DNA from: Leidyana gryllorum EB-2025a
Taxonomy: Eukaryota; Protista; Apicomplexa
Length of the DNA: 64,000 nt
Assembly (NCBI GenBank): GCA_048772705.1
Contig: JBLWGC010000104.1
Coordinates: 248,001 to 312,000 of the forward strand
Direction: 5' to 3'
Position 1 is the stretch's first letter; the number at the start of each line of letters is the position of its first letter. The notes below the pieces were generated by a model. It was not told the origin of the DNA. It made no database searches and worked only from the letters and a program-made list of their open reading frames with translations. The position numbers and the translations under genes were made by a program. Shown here in pieces: positions 42,944 to 43,357 of the stretch.

Positions 42944-43357
42944 ATGTCTGGCAGAGGAAAGGCTAAGACTGGAACCGCCCGCAAGTCCGTCGGTGGCAAG
43001 GAGAGCAAGAGTCAGTCCCGGTCCGCTCGCGCAGGTTTGTCCTTCCCTGTCGGAAGAACCAACCGTTTCATCCGTGAGGGTCACTATGCCCAAAGGGTGG
43101 GTGCTGGTGCTTCCGTTTATCTGGCCGCTGTGCTAGAGTATCTGGCTGCGGAGCTTCTTGAGCTCGCTGGCAACGTCTGCAAGGACAACAAGAAGACCAG
43201 AATCATTCCGCGCCACCTTGCTCTCGCCATCCGTGGTGACGAGGAGCTCGCTCAGCTCCTCGGAAAGGTTACTATTGCTTCTGGTGGTGTCCCCCCCAGC
43301 ATCAATGAGTCTCTGCTGCCCAAGAAGTCCAAGGGCAAAGCTGCTGGCGAGGAGTGA
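42944..43357 (+). CDS. H2A: Histone H2A with extended N-tail
   Basis: [49 protein letters not shown] and TIASGGV...LLPKK. No SQ(E/D)-phi H2A.X tail. Confidence 0.98.

Follow-up and report, generated by a model that had tools for sequence, protein, structure and literature searches.

A histone H2A gene of the gregarine Leidyana gryllorum carries a partly conserved ARKS box that resembles the tail of histone H3

Results

The window, which is the whole stretch of 64,000 nucleotides from contig JBLWGC010000104.1 of Leidyana gryllorum EB-2025a that was analyzed here, contains a histone H2A gene with a nine-residue box in its N-terminal tail that closely resembles the K9 region of histone H3. Judged by its sequence and that of its relatives, this ARKS box is real and partly conserved, and any use of it is putative. 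At a little better than even confidence, we read the gene as a conventional H2A with a clade-typical ARK[S/T] box, in which the likeness to H3 is composite and the box serves as an ordinary modifiable patch of the tail. The gene would then be a conventional, replication-type H2A of a eugregarine-like apicomplexan, transcribed from a bidirectional promoter that it has in common with H4, and its extended tail would carry a clade-typical basic box of the form [A/G]-R-K-[S/T]. Its almost complete resemblance to H3 6-14 would be assembled from the ARK[S/T] core, an ordinary H2A GGK and a species-specific Thr. As an exposed patch, the box would present a lysine open to acetylation or methylation next to a Ser/Thr whose context is R-x-S/T-hydrophobic, and it may modulate charge and the contacts of the tail with DNA or with other factors, with no obligatory second H3K9/S10/K14 platform. 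The two features on which the analysis turns are:

42944..43357, + strand: histone H2A gene, 137 aa, intronless, stop codon included (ORF, Pfam and solved-chain matches)
42974..43000, + strand: ARKS box T11-A-R-K-S-V-G-G-K19, Met counted (codons ACC GCC CGC AAG TCC GTC GGT GGC AAG)

The ARKS box and its match to H3

The original prediction, which numbered residues from the initiator Met, held that H2A residues 11-19 read TARKSVGGK, and codons 11-19 do occupy exactly 42974-43000; in mature-histone numbering, the residues of interest are K13, S14 and K18. Its count of 8/9 identities to H3 residues 6-14 was likewise reproduced with textbook H3, which reads KQTARKST-GGKAPRK (PDB chain 1eqz_C). Composition-preserving shuffles of the 28-residue tail (100,000) gave a match of at least 8/9 to the H3 9-mer 4 times (4e-5), and ARK[ST] appeared in 2.4% of 100,000 shuffles of the window H2A tail. 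For a single tail an 8/9 match is improbable; it is less so when the many lineages of H2A and the many motifs of H3 are taken into account, along with a scan that covered ~250,000 windows. These numbers bear on coincidence as a rival explanation, in which ARKS would have arisen by drift in the ancestor of the group and would persist by inertia, the 8/9 match being a look-elsewhere effect. We consider this rather unlikely. The make-up of H2A tails, with K, R, G, A, S and T as their building blocks, speaks for it together with the shuffle frequency of ARK[ST] and the number of windows scanned, whereas the low probability of the full match per tail speaks against it.

Alignment with HMMER paired window R13-K-S-V-G-G-K19 with human H2A R3-G-K-Q-G-G-K9. 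Since its GGK pairs with the human G-G-K9, this part of the box is ordinary H2A sequence that coincidentally equals H3 G12-G13-K14, which also fits coincidence. In the window, K19 is followed by E20-S21 (G18-K19-E20-S21), with no proline at +2, where textbook H3 reads GGKAPRK. Structures of GCN5 with bound peptides define the site context of this enzyme as G-K-x-P (H3 G13-K14-A15-P16). A K14-type GCN5 acetylation site had been proposed for the H2A tail, and this part of the proposal is not supported, as the G-K-x-P context of H3K14 is absent and the GGK aligns with human H2A GGK9. With a GGK that is generic in H2A, and E-S instead of A-P behind it, the K14-type claim leans on a generic H2A feature.

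A12-R13-K14-S15 lies in an exposed, disordered tail and matches the pattern of chromodomain ligands, with A at -2, R at -1 and S/T at +1 of the lysine, and R13-K14-S15-V16 fits R-x-S/T-hydrophobic, the basophilic-kinase context of a methyl-phospho switch. This consensus suits kinases of the Aurora/AGC type. The window H2A N-tail is ~8 residues longer than that of human H2A, and the box is placed between an SGRGKAK head and a GGK...SRS body, 16-17 residues N-terminal of the AGL at the fold start and past the segment that aligns with human H2A K9.

Identity of the H2A gene and its paralogues

The encoded protein matched the Pfam families PF00125 (1.6e-13) and PF16211, the H2A C-terminus (5.3e-14), and its residues 13-131 aligned to solved canonical H2A chains at ~1e-49 (HMMER). 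Its nearest proteins were those of Gregarina sp. Poly (81%), Protomagalhaensia sp. (79%) and G. niphandrodes (72%), and unnamed proteins from public run assemblies showed 76-81% identity. Identity to fungal, plant and animal H2A was 65-72%. The C-terminus reads KGKAAGEE and is without an SQ[E/D]-hydrophobic end.

The genome assembly (15.5 Mb, 237 contigs, ~52% GC) contains six H2A-family genes, among which the window gene alone is of the conventional type. Those H2A and H3 paralogues that have introns were compared exon by exon. The further H2A-family genes are:

L003: H2A.Z-like gene with a C-extension of ~50 residues, at a separate locus
L005 and L006/L007: two H2A-like genes with long acidic C-tails
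L002: divergent H2A of 139 aa that ends in ADEEEI
L004: H2A-family gene with an intron

These five are 36-56% identical to the window H2A, and ARK[S/T] is absent from all of them. The gene had been described as an H2A variant, a label that it does not bear out: it is the sole conventional H2A and is paired with H4, and the other five diverge. Because identity to the H2As of other eukaryotes (65-72%) exceeds that among paralogues, it is to be classed as a conventional H2A and not as a variant. The gene has the histone fold and the docking segment of a canonical H2A, carries no marks of H2A.Z, H2A.X or other variants, is intronless and is clustered with a core histone gene. The H2A family as a whole is unusually rich for so small a genome.

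In a tree built on the histone-fold part only, the window H2A and the gregarine H2As formed one clade with 100/100 support, and branching within that clade was unresolved. This grouping marks the genome as that of a eugregarine-like apicomplexan distinct from G. niphandrodes. When a profile of the gregarine H2As served as the query, the sole addition was the G. niphandrodes sequence. A homologue search with tail residues 1-40 alone returned six candidates and one irrelevant match, and nothing useful.

Conservation of the box among gregarines

The residues at the position of the box were compared across nine orthologues, with the window counted:

Window: TARKSV
P0014: VARKST
P0016 (syntenic orthologue): GARKTV
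P0019: VARKSA
P0021: VARKTT
P0015: VGRKST
P0018: GARKAP
P0027: GGKSK, box absent
G. niphandrodes: GKRSS, box absent

The ARK[S/T] core was present in strict form in 5/9 and in relaxed form in 7/9, and by this alignment it is typical of the gregarine clade and partly conserved. Residues T11, V16, G17 and G18 varied among orthologues, which together with the two sequences that lack the box favors coincidence. The expectation that relatives would keep the motif was therefore borne out in part: the core is found in most orthologues, but it was lost in G. niphandrodes and P0027. Its loss in these two argues against an indispensable platform. The joint occurrence of A/G(-2), R(-1) and S/T(+1) in 6/9 orthologues goes beyond the specificity that a simple patch of charge would require, and counts to that extent against the reading that we favor.

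The syntenic orthologue P0016, which is 79% identical to the window H2A, is encoded on a contig (L031) in which the third positions of the Ala, Arg and Lys codons have all changed (GCT CGA AAA vs. GCC CGC AAG), so that the residues of the box were held through deep synonymous turnover. A 10-residue stretch of the tail is identical between the two proteins. The whole tail with its box is thus well kept despite this turnover, which speaks against coincidence; as most of the tail is equally kept, the box is no more constrained than the neighboring residues. With the branching of the clade unresolved, the order of gains and losses of the box cannot be set.

Outside the gregarine clade, ARK[ST] occurred in 0/279 distinct H2A tails, where 3.6 were expected from per-tail shuffles, and RK[ST] was seen in 2 of them vs. 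~32 expected; these tails are mutually related rather than independent and come without coccidian, haemosporidian or Cryptosporidium H2A, and since they share ancestry the counts show rarity, not avoidance. Within this sample, the original prediction is right in stating that the motif is missing from canonical H2A tails. For Plasmodium falciparum, a published H2A peptide, GTSNSAKAGLQFPVGR, shows no ARKS adjoining the fold (PMC3538786). The near-absence of RK[ST] from other H2A tails suggests that something clade-specific may hold the box in place, another point against an entirely ordinary patch. Recurrence of the core in 5-7 of nine orthologues of a clade with full support, together with its absence from the other tails, argues against pure chance.

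The H3 genes of the same genome

All three non-centromeric H3 genes of the genome have altered tails, each with residues inserted between the equivalents of K9 and K14:

C230 (L009:1456-1881): H3 gene, reads TKTKHAARKSTTLAGK... and KAARKSVSTAAGG
C104:529k (L008:1372-1875): H3 gene, reads TKTRHIARKTTNVGAGK, with R replacing K4
C2 (L011, G000:C2:~266900-267400), minus strand: third H3 gene, intron-containing, reads SKTRHSARKTTAAKG

Their K9 boxes read AARKSTTLAGK, IARKTTNVGAGK and SARKTTAAKG. The best 9-mer match between the H2A tail and these H3 tails was 5/9, through ARKSV of the K27 box. Comparison of the H2A and H3 paralogues thus upheld the ARK[S/T] core as a feature common to H2A and the organism's own H3, and confined the 8/9 identity to textbook H3. 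As far as the aligned tails go, this core alone is what H2A and the resident H3 have in common. Because each H3 has 2-3 residues inserted before its K14 equivalent, the H2A box does not duplicate theirs.

Gene conversion from H3 was considered as a source of the box and rejected, as the box DNA is only 14-18/27 identical to four H3 boxes of the C230 and C104 genes; identity this low gives no pointer to such an event, and its lack is in keeping with coincidence. The bases common to the H2A and H3 boxes reflect codon usage.

The H4-H2A locus and its expression

The H2A gene is the divergent partner of an H4 gene, and the features of the locus are:

42346..42660, - strand: histone H4 gene, divergent partner of H2A (ORF, Pfam histone-fold matches)
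42661..42943, no strand: H4-H2A intergenic region of 283 bp, shared bidirectional promoter (alignment with the orthologous locus)
42774-42782: conserved promoter block TGTCCCAAA (alignment with L031:5812-6000)
42799-42810: conserved promoter block TCGCGTGGCGCG, with an E2F-like GGCGCG core (alignment with L031:5812-6000)
42834..43482, + strand: apparent H2A transcript unit with ~110 nt of 5' UTR, the CDS and ~125 nt of 3' UTR (649-nt contig, run X1)

The two conserved blocks are candidate histone-promoter elements by alignment. The first of them, TGTCCCAAA, is found again in an H2B-H3 intergenic region, where it lies 112 bp upstream of the start of H3 (L009:1344). A DnaJ C-terminal gene lies upstream of the H4-H2A pair, and the order DnaJ_C - H4(-) - H2A(+) is also found on the 22-kb Logan contig L031, so the H4-H2A pairing is kept in a related species. 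Divergent core-histone pairs are usually H2A-H2B and H3-H4. The pairs observed in this genome are H4-H2A and H2B-H3 (G000:C230:313024-314090; L009, L015). The window H4 tail (42580-42660, minus strand) has no lysine at the textbook K16 position and has one extra residue.

Part of the 1.2-kb stretch around the two genes (window 42300-43500) was contained in 20 runs from 8 studies. In X1, X5 (recorded as RNA-Seq) and X19, the stretch was covered by a relative that is 95-99% identical, in separate pieces: one piece lay over H4, and over H2A there was one each in X1 and X19 and two overlapping pieces in X5. The central part of the promoter (~42750-42832) was uncovered in all three. Genomic DNA would span this gap, so the H4 and H2A pieces look like transcripts, although such contigs do not prove strand or exact transcript ends and DNA can occur in RNA libraries. 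Transcription of the H2A gene in a ~97% identical relative is therefore probable. The original prediction would have lost its ground with a silent gene, and the separate H4 and H2A contigs from RNA-type runs of this near-identical relative, with the motif intact, point to an expressed one. The sole difference within the box in the ~97% identical relative was a synonymous GTC>GTT at 42991. X1 showed ~18 differences over the CDS, ~17 of them synonymous at third positions, the exception being 43298 A>G (S119G). Reads of the stretch were absent from the raw-read RNA run X23, which has no bearing on expression. The 95-99% identical relative came from three studies (X1, X5, X19) whose runs are filed with two or more host or organism labels, and this gregarine lineage may have been sampled repeatedly in public data.

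Candidate readers and writers

Any modification or reader of the box we infer, and the genome was surveyed for proteins of the classes concerned. The chromodomain family PF00385 was detected at 113 places in the 15.5-Mb assembly. Most of these places lie inside ORFs of ~1100-1270 aa that are often clustered on short contigs (e.g., C201, C96, C55, C25, C37), and the >100 chromodomain ORFs look like chromodomain-bearing LTR retroelements. Two genes are HP1-like:

G000:C213:177809-179125: L029, HP1-like, 439 aa, N-terminal chromodomain
G000:C104:214383-214748: L023, HP1-like, small, ~33 kb upstream of the window

The chromodomain of L029 is closest to those of MPP8, SUV39H1, CBX7, HP1 and LHP1, and in alignment to MPP8 it keeps the three aromatic-cage positions Y, W and Y. 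The C-terminal stretch of the same protein looks like a divergent chromoshadow domain and is without a Pfam call. Pfam searches of the genome for Pre-SET (SUV39-type) and chromoshadow domains were blank, and the controls were equally blank, so that these searches say nothing about absence. Seven SET genes were detected; they have the SET domain only and look SMYD-like or are small.

Complex prediction was carried out for L029 residues 20-95 with H2A residues 1-32, using unmethylated lysine, and gave a score of 0.36 vs. 0.02 for the best control. Contacts agreed to at least 94% among the three runs, with a partner pLDDT of 51-52. The mark applied was reached by 51/78 solved complexes and 2/108 mismatched pairs; scores of 0.60 or below comprised just 5 of the 78 solved complexes, yet all 4 passing mismatches, and since many ARKS complexes of this family have been solved, a pass may be model memory. 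The prediction lends weak support to a structural compatibility of the H2A tail with the L029 chromodomain, and to nothing more.

These results bear on another rival explanation, that of a true H3K9/K27-type mimic, in which K13 would be methylated by an H3 ARK[S/T] enzyme and read by HP1-like or integrase chromodomains, with S14ph as the off-switch. We regard this as improbable. Elsewhere, the ARKS/T motif drives binding of the Cbx3 chromodomain to H3K9, H1.4K26 and G9aK185 peptides (PMC3325965), and HP1-class chromodomains bind the ARKS/T of H3K9, H1.4K26 and G9a K185 (PMC3325965; PMC2939574). The window box offers the same A(-2), R(-1), K and S(+1), has ARKSV in common with the organism's own K27 box, and stands in a genome with two HP1-like genes and >100 retroelement chromodomains. 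The resemblance of L029 to MPP8, SUV39H1, CBX7 and HP1 with its cage residues kept, the weakly passing complex prediction and the presence of H3K9me3 in the apicomplexans Toxoplasma and Cryptosporidium (PMC13739221) are all consistent with mimicry. Plasmodium 14-3-3 reads phosphorylated H3 (PMC3538786). Against mimicry stand the missing box in G. niphandrodes and P0027 and the ARKA of P0018, the possibility that the weak pass stems from model memory of solved ARKS complexes, and the survey of writers, with its blank Pre-SET and chromoshadow searches (controls blank too) and seven SMYD-like or small SET genes. PRC2 subunits are reported to have been lost at the root of Myzozoa, which makes a K27-type writer unlikely (bioRxiv 10.1101/2021.07.16.452543).

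A fuller version, in which the bulk H2A of the gregarine clade would carry a working H3K9-like module (K13 methylated, HP1-like and possibly integrase readers, S14ph as a gate) for heterochromatin signaling alongside or partly replacing the divergent H3 tails, seems to us slightly more doubtful again. The reading of a conventional H2A with an ordinary modifiable patch is not without its own difficulties: the HP1-like chromodomains, whose Y/W/Y cage is intact, resemble readers of H3K9me, and complex prediction weakly suggests that the tail could be placed on the HP1-like L029.

Significance

ARKS/T boxes are a docking grammar of heterochromatin proteins and are known outside H3 on H1.4 and a few enzymes. 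A full-text literature search found no ARKS box described on any H2A, in agreement with the original prediction, which knew of no equivalent. What is new here is an ARKS/T motif of known class on a new carrier, H2A. If the box is modified and read, it would provide two extra K9-type sites per nucleosome, on a tail that exits elsewhere, and gregarines would offer a natural experiment on whether it is the motif or the identity of the histone through which the code is read. The interpretation of anti-H3K9me and anti-S10ph antibody signals in gregarine parasites would be affected as well. The box gains some weight from the unusually altered tails of the three H3 genes. The practical importance is modest, as this is a sequence resemblance with partial conservation in an uncultured parasite lineage whose members are hard to work with.

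Comparison with known systems

The closest comparison is with the K9 and K27 ARKS boxes of H3 itself. The H2A box resembles them in the A-R-K-S core, in the GGK two residues on as at H3 K14, and in its position on the exposed N-tail of a core histone. It differs in that the H2A tail exits the nucleosome elsewhere, in that the +2 residue is V and not T, and in that K18 (mature numbering) is followed by E-S where H3 has A-P.

A precedent for one tail motif on two core histones is the SGRGK head of H2A and H4, which opens the window H2A as well as the window H4. The SGRGK of H2A and H4 is modified by the same enzymes. This sharing is ancient and near-universal, whereas the ARKS box of H2A is found in one gregarine clade within the sample.

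H1.4 K26 (KARKSAG) and G9a K185 (HRARKT) likewise carry ARK[S/T] on a protein other than H3, and the affinity of the Cbx3 chromodomain for these motifs is comparable to that for H3K9me3 (PMC3325965). Their methylation and reader binding were established by experiment, whereas the gregarine H2A box is known from sequence; the gregarine carrier is a core histone with two copies per nucleosome.

Finally, viral and other histone mimics, such as the ARSK of influenza NS1 and the ARKS of SARS-CoV-2 ORF8, are short H3-like linear motifs proposed to engage the machinery of H3, and the ORF8 case is disputed (PMC10833455). Those mimics are non-histone decoys, whereas the H2A box is part of chromatin.
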